From sequence record NC_025447.1: 64,000 bases of DNA; one strand, 5' to 3'. A program made the position numbers and the translations under genes. The notes under the pieces were generated by a model. The model was given only the letters and a program-made list of their open reading frames with translations, was not told the origin of the DNA and did no database searches. How positions within the stretch are numbered: position 1 is the first letter of the stretch; each line of letters starts with the position of its first letter. This document shows, one piece after another, positions 5,890-62,127 of the stretch.

Positions 5890-6744
5890 ATGAAACTTTA
5901 TCTAATCGTTGACTACAATAAGGATTATGCTGGTAACTTCACCGAAGATTCGGATGGATATTGCACATCGACTAATGTCAATGTACGTAGCAGTAGTGCT
6001 CATGAACATGAATCTTGTAAAAATCTAAAAGATTTTATCGCATACCGAGCATTTGAAAAGAACTTCTGCCGCAGTAGATATTCGAAGTTTGAGTACCCGT
6101 TAATTGATGTTCCTGATGATTTAATGTTCCAGTTAATGCTGACCGGAGTTCAAGATTATGATTACATAGCGTATAATCATATTACTAAGAAAATTTATAT
6201 TGGTACATCATCACATGACACTTCTATGTATGCATCATGCCCAGATGATCGAATGAATGATAGAAAATCATACTATAGTGGGTCAGTTGGTTTAAATGAT
6301 TCATTAAATAAAAATTCATTCTTTGAGTATGTTTATGATTACCATCATGAGAAAAAAGAACGTGAAGATTACTGTATAGCAATTGATAGTACTAATGGTT
6401 ATGAAGACGTGAAAGAAGCACTTATGCCGTACATTATTGAAAAGTACTACAAAGATTTTCAGTACTGTAGTAATTTTCTAATCAGAAATTCTATTATAAT
6501 CGGTCGCCAATCTAGTGCATACTCTCAGTACTATAATGATTCACCAGTAGCATCGGCAAATGAAATGTGTGATATTTTACAAATTCCACGTGAAGATATG
6601 GCATTCATTTTTACATCTTTTATTGAAGATGATGAGTTGTATATTAAAAATAAACACCGTTTCATGCCAAGCAAGATTGAGGTTATTCGAAGTTTTAGTG
6701 TTGATATACTAACAAATTTCACAGAAAAAACCGAATATAACTGA
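5890..6744 (+). CDS. hypothetical protein (EE..FQ family)
   Basis: start moved to ATG 5890 after GGAG; DDLMFQLMLT. Confidence 0.75.
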   Translation: MKLYLIVDYNKDYAGNFTEDSDGYCTSTNVNVRSSSAHEHESCKNLKDFIAYRAFEKNFCRSRYSKFEYPLIDVPDDLMFQLMLTGVQDYDYIAYNHITKKIYIGTSSHDTSMYASCPDDRMNDRKSYYSGSVGLNDSLNKNSFFEYVYDYHHEKKEREDYCIAIDSTNGYEDVKEALMPYIIEKYYKDFQYCSNFLIRNSIIIGRQSSAYSQYYNDSPVASANEMCDILQIPREDMAFIFTSFIEDDELYIKNKHRFMPSKIEVIRSFSVDILTNFTEKTEYN

Positions 6745-6770
6745 GACAAATGATAAGTTAATGATATAAT
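6743..6770 (+). promoter_or_regulatory. promoter upstream of ncRNA copy A
   Basis: GAGACA-N16-TATAAT with TG extension. Confidence 0.65.
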
Positions 6771-6772
6771 AT

Positions 6773-6807
6773 AAGGTGACAACATAATATGTTAGTCACC
6801 TTTTTTT
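6773..6807 (+). terminator. intrinsic terminator overlapping the promoter start site
   Basis: AAGGTGACAACATA-a-TATGTT(a)GTCACCTT plus T run. Confidence 0.7.
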
Positions 6808-6829
6808 AATCCTGAAAGGTTCCCATAAG

Positions 6830-7312
6830 GAAATGATTAAAAGCCTAATCCACTCGAAAATGTAGAGGGTAGATGAGTAGTCCTTTCAGTACGAACAGCA
6901 GATGAAACCCGTTAGATGATGGCATAGTTTGAACCACTCACGGCAATGCGGCTGTATAAAGAACTCCAATAGGATAAAGAGAGTTCCTCGATAGACATAT
7001 AAGGATCGCACCTTACCAATTATCTAAGGGAGATTTCATAAGAAATATGCGGTCGGAATTATACAATATAGTTGCGTCCAAATTTTGTGAAATCAAATAC
7101 AAGTACTGGTCATATGGTATTTGTATTATGTGTCGGGATGTTTAAGACCGACGACCGTTGCTACAAGAACCGCGATAGAGAGAAACAGAGCAACCCGCTT
7201 TCGTCTCGTAAGAGAATTCGTGATATGAACTATGTGAAGGCCACCAGCGTCAAATTTTTTTGTTCTTTCCCCTGCGGGGGGATGAAATATGCTCAAGCAA
7301 ACCCCGTCAATA
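6830..7312 (+). ncRNA. candidate large structured non-coding RNA, copy A
   Basis: no credible CDS; colinear homology to 61497-62042; covarying stems; cUGCGg and GUAA tetraloops. Confidence 0.75.
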
Positions 7313-7422
7313 TTAATTAAAAGAAAATAGTACTTGTAGAATTAGACATGCGTAGCATGATAATTCTACTGATGTTGATGCAATCAACGTCACGTATATT
7401 CATTGATGTTTCCATAGGAATA

Positions 7423-19017: not shown

Positions 19018-20599
19018 ATGAATGTAAAAACACAGATGTTGTTACAAAAAGAATACTTAGAAAATATAGAAATGTTCTATAGATTGTCTTTATACGAAAA
19101 TAAAGATAAAAAATATAACTTTTCTAAACAACTAAACACAAGTACTAATGATTATCTATTTTCATCAATGTTTTATGTGAGAGGTTTATTATAATGGATA
19201 AATTTCACACAGATATAACACAGATAGGTAATCTTATCAATAGTCTAATTACTGATTTAGAAGAAAAGTATTTAGGTCGAAATGTATACGTAGAAATGTA
19301 TGAAACATATGGTGTTATTGATATGATTTATTACAGTGCATTGAAGTGTGAAATACGTTTAACAGTATGTTTGTTTGAAAAAAATACATTCAACAGAAGT
19401 ACTGCAATTCGCCAAGTTGGAGTTGATGATATAGAATTATACGAGGAACAATGATGTTTGAGCAAGACTTAGAGATATTCAAAAGTCATATTGATTACTT
19501 GACTATATTAGAAAATGATTTAACTACAAAGTACAAAGGTATTCGTGTTCTGTGCTGGTATGATGATTGGGATTATAAACGTGAACTCACTATTGATCGA
19601 ATTTATTTCAGTGACGGTGTACTAAATGTACATGGTGTAAATGATTTTGGTCATTCATATACATATTCTAATAATGCTAAATTTAAAAGGATCTACAATG
19701 AATGAATATTATCATAATTTATTCGATTACATAAAACTAATAGATGATCTTTCTTTCGAATTTCTTAGTACTGAAAAAGTTCTTGAACCTCTCTATTATG
19801 ATTGTATTAGTTCACTATCTTTAGATGAAAAAGAGATATTATCAAATAATTTACCGTCAACCGTCTGTGTAATCAATGGTTCCAAGGCTGTGGTGTCTGA
19901 GGTTAATTTTCATAAATCACTTAATACAATTGTTTACAAGTTCGATAACACTTGGATCAATCATGTAACCAGTAATATTAAATCTGTGAGATTTTTATGA
20001 ATATAAAAAAATTATTTGAACAAGTAAATTTATTGTACTGGTGTTCAGACGGTTCAGATAAGGAATATAGTGAAGTTTATTTAGAACTGTTTAGAACTGA
20101 AATTCATTATATTCGAAGATACTTAATTGATAACAAAACTAAAGTACAAGTAAGATACCATAATGGTACTTTAAAGGATGGTATAATTATTGGATTGATA
20201 GTTGCACGATGGTCTAGTAATATTAAAGTTGCAGTAAGATTAATGACTGATGATGGTGTCTACACAATAGAAGCTAGTGAGATTATATATTAAATGGATA
20301 TACAAACATTCAATAAGCTAAAGTACTATGATAATGGTTTTGCATTAATAATTAACGAACTTGATGGGATACCATACGAATATCATAATCAATTAATGAA
20401 GATAGTAAAATGTATATGTGAAGAATTAAAAAGTATGTTTAAAAATGAATATGTTTATGATTTAGGTAATAGTAGCAAAAAACTATACATAAAAAAATTC
20501 TGGGGAACGCATTGTGGTTTAATGGTCGATTTAGGTTTAAGTTTAGACGATAATTCTGAATCATGTTCATTATATATAGATGAAATGCGAATATCATGA
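19018..20599 (+). other. run of six small paralog-like CDSs (19018-19194, 19194-19454, 19451-19705, 19698-20000, 19997-20293, 20294-20599)
   Basis: translationally coupled 58-101 aa ORFs; KYLGR/KYKGI motifs in two members. Confidence 0.7.
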
Positions 20600-20625
20600 G
20601 ACGTATCAGAATTCGGTGATATAAT
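20598..20625 (+). promoter_or_regulatory. promoter, GGACA type
   Basis: GAGACG-N16-TATAAT with TG extension. Confidence 0.55.
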
Positions 20626-22390: not shown

Positions 22391-23134
22391 ATGAAACATT
22401 TCTTAGAAGTAACCGTACCTGATGATAAAGATTTATACATTGTAGGTGATTTGCATGGTAATGGTAAACTATGGGATGCTACAGTGAAAGAATTTGGTAT
22501 TACACACAATGATTATGTTTTCAGTGTAGGTGATATTATCGACCGTGGAGAACAAAATTCAAAGCTCCTTTTTGAATTTTTGTTCGGAGAAAATCGTTAC
22601 ATGATTGCAGGTAATCATGAGATGATGTGCGTTGATTCGGAAACACTTCGAGATTGGTATCATTGTTGGATAAGTAATGGTGGTGATAAATTCCTTGATG
22701 AAGTTGGAGGAACAGGCATTCAATTCTTTCGTCAGTACTTAAAAGATCTCCCTATGATTATCCAAATCAATCACCGAGGCTTGAAGATTGGGTTAGTTCA
22801 TGCTGGAGTTCCGTTGGAATATACAACATGGGAACGATTTGTTAATGGGACAAAATCACTTAGTGCTGATATAATTGATAAGTGCTTGTGGGATAGGAAA
22901 ACATTCGATTATTGTAGAACGAATAATACCTATTATGCACCTAAGTTAGATGGAGTGCATTGTGTCTTTAGTGGACATACAGCAGTTACTGATCCACTCA
23001 TTTATGGTAATCGCATTTGGATTGATAGTCAGTTCTTGACGGGTGACTTAACTCTCGCTACTCCACAAAGTGGTGGGATGAGATACTTACGTAAAGAAAA
23101 AGATGAATACTCATTCAATCGTTTCAAAAGGTAA
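22391..23134 (+). CDS. Ser/Thr protein phosphatase-like metallophosphoesterase (lambda NinI-like)
   Basis: GDLHG, GDIIDRG, GNHE, W..NGG, VHAG, GHT. Confidence 0.9.
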   Translation: MKHFLEVTVPDDKDLYIVGDLHGNGKLWDATVKEFGITHNDYVFSVGDIIDRGEQNSKLLFEFLFGENRYMIAGNHEMMCVDSETLRDWYHCWISNGGDKFLDEVGGTGIQFFRQYLKDLPMIIQINHRGLKIGLVHAGVPLEYTTWERFVNGTKSLSADIIDKCLWDRKTFDYCRTNNTYYAPKLDGVHCVFSGHTAVTDPLIYGNRIWIDSQFLTGDLTLATPQSGGMRYLRKEKDEYSFNRFKR

Positions 23135-36164: not shown

Positions 36165-37604
36165 ATGAAAAAATATACAATTGACACAAACGTACTACTA
36201 TCTGACCCTAATGCATCTATTGCTTTTGATGGTGCTGCAATCATTCTACCATTTACAGTACTGGAAGAATTAGATTCGATTAAGAGTCGTAATGTAGATG
36301 TTTCACGCGATGCTCGTGTTGCTATTCGTAACATTGAAGCAATTATTGCAGATGCATCACATGACGAGATTAGTAGTACTGGTGTTAATATTGCTGATGT
36401 TCATACCAATATGAATCCTGATAGCAAATTGTTTGTTATTACAAACGAAGAAGCTGAGGCACTAATTCGTACTAAAGGTACAGAAGAGAAAGTTCAAACC
36501 CTTCTCAAAAGTACTGTACCTGATGATAAAATCATTCTGGTAGCTTTAGCAACAGAATCAGTACTGGTAACTCGTGATATCAACATGCGTATCAAAGCAC
36601 TAAGTTATGGTGTCGAGGTACAAGATTATCGCCATGATATTGTTATTGGTGATAGTGATTTGATTCACATTGGTCAACACCATCTGGAAATCAATTTTTG
36701 GGAAGTATACAGCAACTTAACCAATACTAATATTCAATCCGAACAAGTTGGTCGTCGTTTGTATCATTACATTTCTAAAAGCTTGATTGAACATCTGCTT
36801 CCACAAAATCTATGCATCGGTGATTATCTATATGATGATGCTGACGTATTATTTGTGTACGAAGGACAATCAGCAATTGAGGAAGATGATGGAACACTAA
36901 CACCAGAAGATATTTTGGTATTCCAAGACATTGGACAATCAGTGTCTTTACGTGCTAAAGTATGGGATATTAAAGCAAAGAATATCCAACAAGCACTCGC
37001 CATCAACAGTATTCTCGATCCTGATGTACATCTAACAGTACTGCTAGGTTCTGCTGGTACTGGTAAAACACTAATTACAATTGCTACTGCATTAGAATTA
37101 GTACTGGAAAAACGTAAATACGACCGAATCATCTTCTCTAAAACTCAAGACTCACAGTTTGAAGATATTGGTTTCTTGCCAGGTTCAGAAGCAGAAAAAG
37201 TGATTCCATTCTGTGGAGCCGCGATTGATGCGTTAGAGTTTCTTCATAAAGATGATGCCAATCCACAAGGTAGTATTGAAGAGATTATGAAACGTAATGT
37301 TATTCAATTTAAAGCACTAAACTTTGTACGTGGACGTTCATTCACCAACACTATTCTAGTAGTTGATGAATTCCAAAACATTACACCTGCACAAGCAAAA
37401 ACCATCTTGACACGAGCAGGGTTAAACTGTAAAGTAGTAATTATGGGTAACTTGAGTCAGATTGACAGTAAGTTTATTAGTCCTGTTAACAGTGGTTTGA
37501 CATATGTAACTGAGAAGTTTAAAGACTGGGCAGGTTGTCGTGTCATCGAACTAGAAGGTGTTGTTCGTTCACCACTGGCTGAATTTGCTGAAGAAAATAT
37601 GTAA
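36165..37604 (+). CDS. phoH: PhoH-like ATPase with N-terminal PIN domain
   Basis: IDTNVLL, VLEELD, PDDKII, TRDINMRIKA; GSAGTGKT, RGRSF, VDEFQN, GNLSQID, RSPLA. Confidence 0.93.
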   Translation: MKKYTIDTNVLLSDPNASIAFDGAAIILPFTVLEELDSIKSRNVDVSRDARVAIRNIEAIIADASHDEISSTGVNIADVHTNMNPDSKLFVITNEEAEALIRTKGTEEKVQTLLKSTVPDDKIILVALATESVLVTRDINMRIKALSYGVEVQDYRHDIVIGDSDLIHIGQHHLEINFWEVYSNLTNTNIQSEQVGRRLYHYISKSLIEHLLPQNLCIGDYLYDDADVLFVYEGQSAIEEDDGTLTPEDILVFQDIGQSVSLRAKVWDIKAKNIQQALAINSILDPDVHLTVLLGSAGTGKTLITIATALELVLEKRKYDRIIFSKTQDSQFEDIGFLPGSEAEKVIPFCGAAIDALEFLHKDDANPQGSIEEIMKRNVIQFKALNFVRGRSFTNTILVVDEFQNITPAQAKTILTRAGLNCKVVIMGNLSQIDSKFISPVNSGLTYVTEKFKDWAGCRVIELEGVVRSPLAEFAEENM

Positions 37605-37612
37605 TATTGTAT

Positions 37613-37641
37613 GGGACATAATGTCCCATACATGATATAAT
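37613..37641 (+). promoter_or_regulatory. promoter, GGACA type
   Basis: GGGACA-N17-TATAAT with TG extension; -35 lies inside hairpin TATGGGACA-ta-TGTCCCATA-like. Confidence 0.65.
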
Positions 37642-37672
37642 GTTGTTATCATAATACAGAAGGAGATATAAA

Positions 37673-37861
37673 ATGGCTAAACAACCTAAGAAACAAGAAC
37701 CAGTAGCAAAAGTTAAGAAAGAGAAAGTTATTCAATCCAAAGAACAACGTATGTACGAACAACGTAAGAGTGAAACCCTATCCGGTCTACAAGCTCTACG
37801 CAAGCAAGGTGTACTAACTCGTGCACAGTACCGTGAACTAGTAGCTCAGAAAGGTTTTTGA
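37673..37861 (+). CDS. small basic protein
   Basis: 62 aa, AAGGAG RBS. Confidence 0.75.
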   Translation: MAKQPKKQEPVAKVKKEKVIQSKEQRMYEQRKSETLSGLQALRKQGVLTRAQYRELVAQKGF

Positions 37862-37965
37862 TTCATTTGAAGCAATATTGTGGAGTTCTTAATAAATACT
37901 TTTATAAGAATAATAATACTTTTTATTAAATTAAAAAGAACTCCATGTGTTATTTCAGTTTTTCG

Positions 37966-37991
37966 TCCCTGTCTTTTGGCAGGGATTTTTT
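37966..37991 (+). terminator. intrinsic terminator
   Basis: TCCCTGTC-tttt-GGCAGGGA plus T run. Confidence 0.8.
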
Positions 37992-38087
37992 ATATCTATA
38001 TCTTGACAAAAGGAACAAATCATGAGAACATGTATTAAAGGAAGAATGACTTTCCATTAGGTTATTTTAACTTAAAGGAGATTTCAT

Positions 38088-38645
38088 ATGTTTTTTGACC
38101 AAACATTTACGTTGTATCACGATTCTGGTAAAGTTGAGATTGTAGACGATCTACTTCAATACATTGCTGACCATCAAGGGATAGATCGTTTCCACAGTAA
38201 GATGAAATTTGATTTAGCAGAATTCAACAAAAAGAATCGTGAAACTTTTTGGAAGAACCGTTTCTATTACGAAATGTTCCCAGAAGAGTTTGTGGGTTAT
38301 TATCTTTGTACTGAAAAAGGATTACTTGTATCTCCTGATTTACTTATGGGTGAATACATGATACTCTATAATGAGTACTGGGAACATAAACGTAAAGCTC
38401 GTGATACGGAATGGCGACATAAGCGTTCGTATATGTACAAACATAACCACTCCCGATACAAGCGTCCTAAGACTCAACAAGAGCGTCGTATGGCTTGTGC
38501 AGTACTGAAGGATGAGGGGGAACCTGATATACGTGGAAGACGTAAGATGCGTTCATTACCATCGTATTGGGACGATATCAGAACAAGACATAGTACTGGC
38601 TGGAAATACAGTACTAAACGTAAACATCAATACAAAGGGAGCTAA
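38088..38645 (+). CDS. hypothetical protein with basic C-terminal motif
   Basis: RRKMRSLPSYWDD...WKYSTKRKHQYK; AAGGAG RBS. Confidence 0.75.
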   Translation: MFFDQTFTLYHDSGKVEIVDDLLQYIADHQGIDRFHSKMKFDLAEFNKKNRETFWKNRFYYEMFPEEFVGYYLCTEKGLLVSPDLLMGEYMILYNEYWEHKRKARDTEWRHKRSYMYKHNHSRYKRPKTQQERRMACAVLKDEGEPDIRGRRKMRSLPSYWDDIRTRHSTGWKYSTKRKHQYKGS

Positions 38646-60018: not shown

Positions 60019-60630
60019 ATGAACAAATATCATGTTTACTATACGACAAAATTATCACTTCTTGAAGAATTAAATCAACGAAGTACTAAGATGAAACGCT
60101 ACACTTTAAATGGTATTACTTTTCGATATTTCCCACAAAAAGTTCTTACTTTTGTTAAGAATCCAAAATGCGTGGCATGTGGGATTGAAGCTACTGAAGT
60201 ACGCATTGAACGTTCATTATGTTCTGATCCAGTATATGGTAAACCACATTTAAATGTATATGCTGTATGTGGTCTTTATGAAGTTTTAATGACAGTTGAC
60301 CATAATCATCTGGCATCTAAGGGTGGACCTGATTTAGAGTCAAACTTTAATACTATGTGCTCCAGATGTAATCAACTACGTTCGAATAAAACTGAAACAG
60401 TTGATGAGTTTCTTGAGAAAGTTAAAGGTCGTAATCTTCTCCAAGAACATATGAATAATTTCTTTAATGTACAAAAAAAGAAAAATAACATTGACAAGTC
60501 GAAACTACTAGAAGAACGTAGGTTACGTCAAGAATTATGGGAAACTGATCATCTATGGCATGTTCGAGAGTTTGGTCGTCATATGAAAGCTTTGAAAAAA
60601 GAACAGAAGAAATTGAATAAACATGATTGA
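60019..60630 (+). CDS. HNH endonuclease
   Basis: CVACG, TVDHNHLASKGG, NFNTMCSRCNQLRSNK. Confidence 0.85.
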   Translation: MNKYHVYYTTKLSLLEELNQRSTKMKRYTLNGITFRYFPQKVLTFVKNPKCVACGIEATEVRIERSLCSDPVYGKPHLNVYAVCGLYEVLMTVDHNHLASKGGPDLESNFNTMCSRCNQLRSNKTETVDEFLEKVKGRNLLQEHMNNFFNVQKKKNNIDKSKLLEERRLRQELWETDHLWHVREFGRHMKALKKEQKKLNKHD

Positions 60631-60641: not shown

Positions 60642-60670
60642 AGGGACTTGAGTATTCAAGTCCTTTTTTT
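60642..60670 (+). terminator. intrinsic terminator
   Basis: AGGGACTTGA-gta-TTCAAGTCCT plus T run. Confidence 0.8.
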
Positions 60671-61438: not shown

Positions 61439-61466
61439 GGGACATAACACATCCTAGTGATATAAT
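61439..61466 (+). promoter_or_regulatory. promoter upstream of ncRNA copy B
   Basis: GGGACA-N16-TATAAT with TG extension. Confidence 0.7.
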
Positions 61467-61496
61467 GTATATTGTAAAATGACAACGGACATTGAA

Positions 61497-62042
61497 AAAT
61501 GGATAATGAGAACCTACTTCTCTTGAAAATGTAAAGGATAGATGAGCTTTACCGTTGTAGCGAACAGCAAAAGAAACCTGTTAGAGTACTGGCATTCAAA
61601 CAAACACGATGTAAGACCACGAATCACGGCGACACGGCTGTATAAAGAACTCCGATAAGCATACAGAGAGTTCCTAGATAGATGTATAAGGTTCGCACCT
61701 TACCAGATTTGCTAAGGGAGTTTAAGAATAGCGGACGCAATTTTACAAGAAAGTTGCGTCCAAAATTTGAGAACAGGTACTACTTTGATCGAATAGAGTT
61801 AGTACTGAGTGCTGTTGATGAAAAGACCAGCGACCGTTGCATATGACTGCGATAGAGAGAAACCGAGCAACCCGCTTTCGCTCTCTAAATTTTGGTACAA
61901 GAAAGATCCGTCCAAAATTTGAGAAATTCGCAATTCGATAATATCCGATGCCATCATCGTCAAGAGAGACTTAATTGTCTCTTTTTTATTACCTTCATTC
62001 CCCTGCGGGGGGATGTAATAGTCCTCAACAAATCCCGTCAAG
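61497..62042 (+). ncRNA. candidate large structured non-coding RNA, copy B
   Basis: colinear homology to 6830-7312; dedicated promoter; covarying stems; cUGCGg loop. Confidence 0.75.
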
Positions 62043-62127
62043 TTTTTAAAGTACATTATCATTTTCAGAAGGAACTAGTTTACGAAGTAAACGCAGTGAC
62101 TTCTTGAGTTACGAGAGAACGAAGTGA

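Follow-up and report, generated by a model that had tools for sequence, protein, structure and literature searches.

The locus and the RNA family

The DNA considered here is a stretch of 64,000 nt (the window, to whose first letter all positions below refer unless a genome position is given) from Escherichia phage 121Q (Asteriusvirus, 348.5 kb; NC_025447.1), covering genome positions 186001-250000. Towards the end of the window, a 690-nt gap without a long open reading frame (ORF) lies between a DUF7325 structural gene and a gene of unassigned function, and this gap holds copy B of the RNA element under study. The long form of its predicted transcript runs from 61473 to 62042 on the + strand and is marked by a match to a profile hidden Markov model (HMM) of the family, by at least 11 covarying helices and by the absence of a conserved reading frame. 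GenBank places a 51-aa minus-strand ORF (gene 516, 61799-61954) inside the most conserved core of the RNA. Copy B is a member of a family of large structured RNAs read from the + strand, and the explanation that we hold to be likely as a whole is that it is a functional paralog in an undescribed family of large pseudoknotted non-coding RNAs (ncRNAs) of Rak2-like jumbo phages. It is part of the same joint explanation, and likely on the same footing, that the family is limited to these phages, with three to five copies per genome, each with its own promoter.

Copies at about 90, 193 (copy A), 247 (copy B) and 327 kb make up the set of four in the 121Q genome, and every one is on the + strand. 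Copy A (about 6777-7311) is 74% identical to copy B over 387 nt, with a further 89% over 45 nt at the 3' end. The family HMM matches copy B at 61494-62045 with an expectation value (E) of 1e-99 and copy A with 2e-113. A covariance model of the 3' core (model R1) scores B at 86.9 bits (E 1e-20) and A at 77.4 bits, and finds no further match in the window. The sequence-only reading, an earlier inspection of these letters, had allowed that B might be a decayed duplicate; this is unlikely, since B scores above A on the core model. Copy B has 40.7% G+C against 33.4% for the window, and across the family the elements are 445-625 nt long with 40-41% G+C, compared with 33% for the genome.

Related elements were found in 72 phage records, with hosts in Escherichia, Klebsiella, Salmonella, Erwinia, Yersinia, Cronobacter, Pectobacterium, Serratia and Xanthomonas. 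In every record inspected the element lies in an intergenic gap that is unannotated or bears only small 'hypothetical protein' ORFs. There are five copies per genome in GAP32, CBB, Serratia phage BF, Yersinia phage fHe-Yen9-04, Munch, XbC2, XaC1, Kaldavass and EJP2. The copies occupy similar map positions in GAP32, CBB, BF, fHe-Yen9-04 and Munch, and for three loci orthology was confirmed by the flanking genes. Klebsiella phage RaK2 has three copies; these are strongly diverged and lack both the peripheral hairpin of P3 and the central motif described below. A strict pattern of the core, searched in a collection of viral contigs, gave 50 matches, all 50 in contigs of about 350-370 kb or their fragments. 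A looser pattern, applied to bacterial genomes and metagenomes, gave 240 loci of which about 22 were true members after HMM filtering, the remainder being mostly chance matches in G+C-rich genomes.

A covarying fold with variable periphery

An alignment of 75 and then 93 unique full-length sequences (median pairwise identity 63%) contains at least 11 covarying helices, two of which are pseudoknots. Eleven helices have three or more stacked pairs changed on both sides, against none in 12 column-order shuffles, and the per-pair counts over the 93 sequences, RNAalifold and pair-count controls are all in agreement. An independent RNAalifold run on the 3' core found compensatory changes in 11 of 15 pairs. 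In a pair-count test on 97 model-aligned matches, 99.4% of cells were paired, compared with 79.2% after shuffling (0 of 500 shuffles as good) and 40-53% with slid partners; this alignment was fitted to the covariance model, which somewhat favours the structure. G.U pairs are abundant, and since G.U and U.G pairs fit only an RNA of the + strand, this is the strand of the RNA. Across genera the elements are only about 50-60% identical, yet the junction sequences are near-invariant. Copy B itself is standard-paired at all listed positions of P2, P4, P7b, PK, P9, P10 and P11; of the five listed for the base of P12 it pairs four, 61881-61925 being a C-A apposition.

From its 5' end, copy B opens with a domain (61482-61558) in which P1 (61482-61488 with 61552-61558) encloses two hairpins, and P1 and P1a show several pair types among the 93 sequences. 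One of these hairpins carries the near-invariant loop GAAAAUGUA (61525-61533) and is followed by the conserved joiner AGAUGAG (61540-61546). P2 (61564-61568 with 61637-61641) has a standard pair in 82-93 of the 93 sequences, with exchanges among AU, UA, GC and CG, and P3 (61578-61581 with 61626-61629) is paired in 90-93 of them. Inside P3 stands a two-state peripheral hairpin, P3a, with a 35-nt form in B (61588-61622) and a 17-nt form (UGGCAUAGUUUGAACCA, 6920-6936) in A; each form turns up again in paralogs across all genera, and the distribution differs from that of P12. The central domain is closed by P6 (61720-61723 with 61771-61774) and contains a hairpin formed by GGACGCAA (61733-61740) and UUGCGUCC (61754-61761). 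Next comes hairpin P7 (61776-61806), whose 7-nt loop AUCGAAU (61788-61794) pairs with AUUCGAU (61933-61939) in a long-range pseudoknot of seven pairs, each with three to five standard pair types and paired in 89-93 of the 93 sequences. Every 121Q paralog has its own pair of pseudoknot sequences. The conserved 3' core (61829-61942) comprises the P9 pseudoknot GUUGC/GCAAC (61836-61840 with 61867-61871), P10 (61848-61852 with 61928-61932), P11 (61855-61859 with 61875-61879) and the hairpin P12. The pair counts over the 93 sequences gave no support to P13 or to an alternative pairing of P5. The picture agrees with what had been proposed from the letters of copies A and B, a large structured RNA in which length varies in peripheral helices only: the covarying core is kept, and P12 is extended rather than broken.

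A motif with two possible places

At the tip of P12 in copy B (61881-61925), the segment 61896-61925 repeats 61744-61773, on the 3' side of the GGACGCAA/UUGCGUCC hairpin, at 28 of 30 positions, as blastn within the window (E 4.7e-7) and a script check both confirm. The extra piece does sit where copy A has its GNRA loop, as had been noticed: A reads UCUC-GUAA-GAGA (7204-7215), a 4-nt G-N-R-A loop on a short P12, and B reads CUCUC (61881-61885), a bulged U, AAAUUUUGG (61887-61895), a 16-nt loop, CCAAAAUUU (61912-61920) and GAGA (61921-61924). The helix AAAUUUUGG/CCAAAAUUU stacks on the basal CUCU/GAGA pairing (61882-61885 with 61921-61924) with one bulged U between them, and P12 of copy B folds in this way on its own (-12.4 kcal/mol, z -2.9). 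The two closing pairs of P12 are standard in all 81 distinct sequences, with double-sided changes, at any length of the insert; because they covary and pair throughout whatever that length, the extra piece extends the helix.

The variation of P12 falls into discrete size classes. Among the first 75 elements, 47 have a P12 of 16-35 nt and 28 one of 46-54 nt, so that the 50 nt of copy B are typical of the long form, which occurs in 33 of the 93 elements. GNRA loops cap 18 of 50 short tips, that of copy A included. The apparent insertion in B is the long state of a two-state peripheral hairpin. The repeated segment corresponds to a motif of about 28 nt with the consensus UACAAUAUAGAUCCGUCCAAAAUUUGAG, found on the tip of a long P12 or else in the central domain. 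Of the 93 elements, 48 have the central copy, three of them with a long tip and 45 with a short or mid-length one; of those that lack it, 33 have a long tip and 12 a short or mid-length one. The motif thus occurs normally once per RNA, on P12 or in the central domain, and both placements are combined in just three elements, copy B and two metagenomic sequences. The two oddities ascribed to copy B, its long P12 and the hairpin with U-run treated below, are real features, but neither is peculiar to it: the first recurs in the 33 elements named and the second in 52 of 93, among them 121Q copy C, which is located beyond the window.

Twin repeats and an optional terminator-like hairpin

Downstream of the core, the motif YGUCAR occurs twice in every element and covaries by identity. 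In copy B both repeats read CGUCAAG: R1 (61958-61964) lies just before the terminator-like hairpin and R2 (62036-62042) at the 3' edge of family-wide conservation, so that together they bracket the terminator-like and the terminal hairpin; the counterparts in copy A are at 7248-7254 and 7305-7311. R1 and R2 agree in 75 of 75 sequences at two positions and in 68 of 75 at the A/G position, and rare changes appear in both repeats of the same RNA (C to U in four sequences, G to U in two RaK2 copies). A search for a Watson-Crick partner of the repeats, with at least 80% pairing over five columns, found none. One reader probably recognises both repeats; it could be a protein, an active site or a partner in trans. 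In RaK2 both repeats read CUUCAAG, which is complementary also to the P7 loop of the same RNA.

The hairpin followed by T6 that had been noted in B, and not in A, ahead of the terminal hairpin was confirmed (61962-61987). It consists of a 9-bp stem, AAGAGAGAC (61962-61970) with GUCUCUUUU (61977-61985), around the loop UUAAUU, with the T6 at 61982-61987, and its folding energy of -10.8 kcal/mol (z -3.8) is equalled by none of 200 shuffles. A stable stem-loop is thus followed by a U-run of at least five, although a simple terminator scan passed over it, probably as the stem runs into the T-run. Across the family, hairpin and U-run are found in 52 of 93 elements with 32 distinct stems, and the U-run after each of these has 5-9 U, at least six in all but one. 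The stem covaries between 121Q and A4 (AGAGAC/GUCUCU versus AGAACC/GGUUCU), so it is the structure, and not the sequence, that is conserved among relatives. Judged by this comparison of sequences, the module has the marks of an intrinsic terminator across the family.

The terminal hairpin of copy B (61994-62018) has a pyrimidine-rich 5' arm, a UGCG loop and, on the 3' arm, an invariant G-run followed by AUG. That this CCCC-UGCG-GGGG hairpin is conserved holds for both copies (7269-7281 in A) and beyond them. In elements with the terminator-like module upstream it averages 9.7 bp, with 63 U.G pairs in all, and in those without it 10.0 bp, with 42 U.G pairs. Since the terminal hairpin is kept equally in either case, transcripts must read past the U-run at least part of the time, and the conservation of RNA structure downstream argues against complete termination. 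The pattern would fit partial termination, with a short and a long isoform. More hairpins separate the element from the ribosome-binding site of the next gene, at 62045-62127 after B and 7312-7347 after A. These look conserved, with compensatory changes across paralogs and genera, as in UUGACAUU-CGAAG-AAUGGCAA, which is found in several genera, and some have loops with CGUCAG or ACGAAGUG.

Predicted promoter and signs of expression

The predicted promoter of copy B (61439-61466, + strand) has a -35-like box, GGGACA (61439-61444), and an extended -10, TGATATAAT (61458-61466), with a predicted start near 61473. In a promoter scan it reached 10 of 12, with the TG present, as GGGACA, 16 nt and a TG-preceded TATAAT. 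All 29 copies first aligned have upstream of them a TGAAAC/TGRGAC box separated by about 16 nt from TGnTATAAT, and copy B conforms to this family pattern. Promoters of this class are known in CBB and GAP32, where they mostly precede DNA-synthesis genes (PMC5259590). The + strand of the window contains TGnTATAAT 15 times and the - strand a single time, and some ordinary genes too are preceded by an extended -10 with a TGRGAC box some 16 nt before it (20597-20625, 22846-22875, 37612-37641).

Signs of expression come from assembled contigs of metatranscriptomes, in which DNA carry-over is possible. One RNA-seq run yielded a 484-nt contig over 61404-61867 at a depth of 14.7, together with contigs of paralogs, and in the same run the element has a depth of 5-28 compared with 0-3 in its flanks. 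Thirteen RNA-labelled runs contain the element and five contain an equally long neighbouring coding stretch, whereas in runs of unstated, probably DNA, type the coding stretch is better represented than the element. The signal in RNA runs is weak and is consistent with transcription.

What the RNA may do

In the explanation that we favour, the RNA would act in trans, as a folded RNA or as the core of a ribonucleoprotein. The 28-nt motif would serve as a module for docking or recognition, and either helix could bring it to one and the same site of the folded RNA. The hairpin with U6 would be a leaky intrinsic terminator, an optional module between the two YGUCAR repeats, yielding a short RNA that ends near 61987 and a read-through RNA extending to at least 62042. 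The near-invariant junctions resemble, by analogy, the cores of catalytic or of ligand- or protein-binding RNAs. A more specific version, which we put forward tentatively and think rather unlikely in this full form, has a ribozyme-like or self-assembling RNA machine whose junctions form the active or ligand core, with the motif docking on it, the YGUCAR repeats serving as sites of one reader and the paralogs specialised. The repeats might then be, for example, processing sites that free the 3' hairpin module, and the paralogs could be kept similar by gene conversion. The family occurs in well-studied, culturable coliphages, whose laboratory E. coli hosts include K-12 MG1655, which makes its function directly testable, and its natural variation (two-state hairpins, a motif with two sites, an optional terminator, three to five paralogs per genome) amounts to a set of built-in experiments.

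Less probable than that version, and unlikely in our judgement, is a cis-acting leader, an RNA that modifies the host polymerase (processive antitermination, as with HK022 put) or attenuates transcription, with the internal terminator as a checkpoint for the genes downstream. When a conserved RNA contains a terminator and yet needs the part beyond it, it has the look of an attenuator or antiterminator. A promoter of its own precedes the element, the next 650 nt or so contain no ORF, co-directional genes lie downstream at most loci, copies without the internal terminator show none before the next gene, and two more conserved hairpins stand between the element and the next ribosome-binding site. 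However, at the locus near 175 kb (Munch and 121Q copy C) the genes after the element are on the minus strand and converge on it, and downstream and other neighbouring genes are unrelated from locus to locus; for these reasons a stand-alone RNA is favoured. Moreover, 41 of 93 elements have no terminator to regulate, and the size and pseudoknotted complexity of the RNA go far beyond those of known antiterminator RNAs.

Origin of the two motif copies in copy B

The sequence-only reading had taken the P12 piece for a self-derived insertion, and as an explanation this would mean that B recently copied its own central piece into the P12 tip, as a lineage-specific, tolerated insertion and possibly in a decaying duplicate. 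We consider it improbable. In 121Q, centre and tip are alike in 28 of 30 positions and have in common the variant AAGAAAG, which is absent from most other genera, and for these reasons some exchange between centre and tip in the 121Q lineage is plausible. Comparison with orthologs tells against the rest. By their flanking genes, the positional orthologs of B are the copies at about 95 kb, among them GAP32_98k, BF_93k and Munch_100k, together with EJP2_90k. (An orthology with the copies at about 260 kb, to which sequence similarity had pointed, was ruled out by the flanking genes, EJP2_250k being a paralog.) All of the positional orthologs (four other genera and EJP2) have the long tip with the core GAUCCGUCCAAAAUUUGAG and none has the central motif, so that, once its presence is compared across related phages, the tip motif is not specific to B.

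Agreement between the central and the tip copy is 28 of 30 in 121Q, 27 in CMSTMSU, 24 in JNE01 and 18 in A4, and since both copies exist, diverged, in the more distantly related JNE01 and A4, both predate the split of these phages. The tip of B departs from its central copy exactly where it matches the tips of its orthologs (GAUCCG versus GUUGCG), its best match outside being GAP32_98k at 20 of 20, and a decaying duplicate sits poorly with the score of B above A on the core model. The version in which B copied itself is largely refuted by the ortholog comparison.

Judged by its sequence, copy B is a mosaic of paralog segments. Its positions 61646-61730 are 95% identical to paralog C over 79 nt, and 61965-62045, which include the terminator-like hairpin, are 92% identical to it, compared with about 70% for B and C overall. 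Paralog C lies about 80 kb from B. These tracts suggest gene conversion between dispersed RNA paralogs, 61646-61730 being a probable conversion tract. As the orthologs have the tip only, B is a mosaic and both copies are old in JNE01 and A4, the central copy is the likelier gain; it is probably the newcomer, the reverse of the direction proposed earlier. On the account that we prefer, the tip motif would be ancestral at the B locus, and gene conversion from paralogs would have overwritten most of a resident copy of the tip type and brought the central motif into B. Seen in this comparison, what looked odd in a single copy is regular in the family, with the direction of the event probably reversed.

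Two unlikely alternatives: origin transcripts and coding genes

Marginally less probable than the self-copy are replication-origin transcripts, in which the G-run would hold the promoter-driven RNA in a persistent R-loop that primes DNA synthesis in the style of T4 oriF and oriG or ColE1 RNA II, with the hairpin and U-run setting the 3' ends of primers. The copies are spaced about 55-100 kb apart along the genome in one orientation, an invariant G6 follows the U-run near the 3' end, the promoter class is the one that in CBB mostly precedes DNA-synthesis genes (PMC5259590), and these phages have T4-like replication genes (also PMC5259590). However, an R-loop primer does not need some 450 nt of upstream covariation with two pseudoknots, and in the RNA the G-run is one strand of a conserved hairpin in which G-C pairs are exchanged for G.U. 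There is also no skew signal at copy A or B, and RaK2 has only three copies.

That the region is protein-coding, or a DNA-level repeat without a role as RNA, is hardly credible: gene 516 is annotated on the minus strand and several related records call up to five small 'hypothetical protein' ORFs across the element, but no conserved reading frame was found (block lengths modulo 3 of 34/31/28; longest ORFs divided 47 to 46 between the strands, with a median of 49 aa), and the compensatory base-pair changes with many G.U pairs are specific to an RNA of the + strand. Gene 516 is almost certainly spurious, and the small ORFs of related records look like annotation artefacts. Published annotations leave the family blank or cover it with spurious small ORFs.

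Several points weigh against the explanation that we prefer, a functional trans-acting paralog with a docking motif and a leaky terminator. Transcription, RNA ends and function are argued from sequence and from metatranscriptome contigs that may contain DNA, and one of these contigs reaches back beyond the predicted start. Where the internal terminator is missing, none is obvious ahead of the next gene, so that some copies may be co-transcribed with genes downstream. The stem of the terminator-like hairpin is A+U-rich, with three G-C pairs in nine, and can itself take up part of the U-run by pairing. Docking is a role that we infer for the motif; 12 of 93 elements, including 121Q copy C, have no recognisable motif at either site, and since its placement follows paralog lineages, few independent events may lie behind it. 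Finally, the mosaic analysis concerns short segments, of which two 79-nt tracts alone are robust.

Neighbouring genes and other features of the window

A protein partner encoded by a shared flanking gene did not emerge: Pfam was uninformative for the neighbours, and the sole similarity across loci was a weak one between an HNH gene upstream of B and an ORF downstream of copy D. The HNH endonuclease gene (60019-60630) lies about 840 nt upstream of copy B, and the ORF, about 540 nt downstream of copy D, is 26% identical to it (E about 1e-5) and has no Pfam match. The likeness is probably coincidental, because such phages seem to have several homing endonucleases, to judge by the records and the CBB paper.

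Copy A, including its promoter (6742-6770), spans 6742-7311 on the + strand, and its positional orthologs are the copies at about 35 kb in other genera. Its central motif lies at 7062-7091. The predicted RNA of copy A begins, directly after the promoter, with a terminator-like hairpin followed by U7 (6775-6807), which is conserved in the copies at about 35 kb of GAP32, CBB, BF, Yen9-04 and Munch and which may be a 5' protective hairpin or the terminator of the upstream gene. Another gap without a long ORF (37604-38088, about 480 nt) follows a TGRGAC promoter. A 62-aa ORF (37673-37861), with a ribosome-binding site that is strong, and then a terminator-like hairpin lie in this gap, which looks ordinary.

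Comparison with known RNAs

The window has no match in Rfam 15 at gathering thresholds, a release whose families include GOLLD, ROOL, OLE, HEARO, raiA, group I and II introns, RNase P, tmRNA, 6S and pRNA, and in permissive mode copies A and B gave only chance-level matches to unrelated small RNAs (E 0.17-7). A full-text search of the literature found no description of the RNA, and the text of a 2023 screen for viral structured RNAs, its candidate lists aside, makes no mention of these phages (PMC10690425). The family thus appears to be an undescribed one of well-supported large structured phage RNAs.

PA5oct, a distantly related jumbo phage that is likewise dependent on the host RNA polymerase, produces abundant non-coding transcripts of 236-619 nt, the putative long non-coding RNAs ncRNA001-004 (PMC7318152). 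Unlike in members of the present family, no homology was detected in the regions of ncRNA002 and ncRNA004 by profile HMM with filters off, and the covariance model of the 3' core found no match in the whole genome of PA5oct or in XacN1 and only noise in Atu_ph07.

Phage and plasmid ncRNAs with promoters of their own offer a further comparison, by analogy only. The fold of phi29 pRNA is essential for packaging, that of ColE1 RNA II and the T4 origin transcripts for priming, and that of HK022 put RNA for antitermination. Those four are smaller or less constrained than the RNA described here and never occur as multiple diverged paralogs per genome, and it matches no Rfam family at all. The hairpin with U-run resembles Rho-independent terminators in that a stem-loop is directly followed by a U-run and in that structure rather than sequence is conserved, and it resembles the gene-end terminators of the phage itself, such as the one at 60642-60665 with ten pairs and T8. 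It differs from the usual kind in lying inside a conserved RNA, upstream of a hairpin and a repeat that are under selection, in being optional (52 of 93) and in the A+U-rich stem of B.

There is a close resemblance in size and architecture to the large ornate ncRNAs of bacteria and phages (GOLLD, ROOL, OLE and raiA), which also have several hundred nucleotides, many covarying helices and pseudoknots, and near-invariant junctions, and of which GOLLD and ROOL are encoded by phages (PMC12286853). Loop-loop pairings that might in principle be intermolecular are another feature in common with those ornate RNAs (PMC12286853). However, paralog-specific loop-loop pairs as a sign of homo-oligomers were ruled out, as two paralogs in one genome can share the same pair, contrary to the expectation for oligomers (the 177k and 340k copies of GAP32). 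The present family further differs from all four in matching no Rfam family, in its restriction to one clade of jumbo phages and in its three to five diverged paralogs per genome, and the window that holds copies A and B contains no tRNA genes.

A group I intron was rejected, as the flanking ORFs are complete and unrelated, RF00028 has no match and the element has its own promoter. The family likewise lacks the signatures, Rfam matches and flanking exons of group I introns and RNase P RNA, and the tertiary role of its motif is one that we infer. Large ribozymes keep their core, whereas in their periphery modules for tertiary contacts disappear, are exchanged or change from one helix to another. 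The family follows the same plan, with a fixed core, peripheral hairpins in alternative states (P12 short or long, P3a of 17 or 35 nt), GNRA caps and one motif on either of two helices. Large, highly structured ncRNAs are rare, and the classes found so far (RNase P, self-splicing introns, OLE, GOLLD and ROOL) have each revealed new RNA biology.

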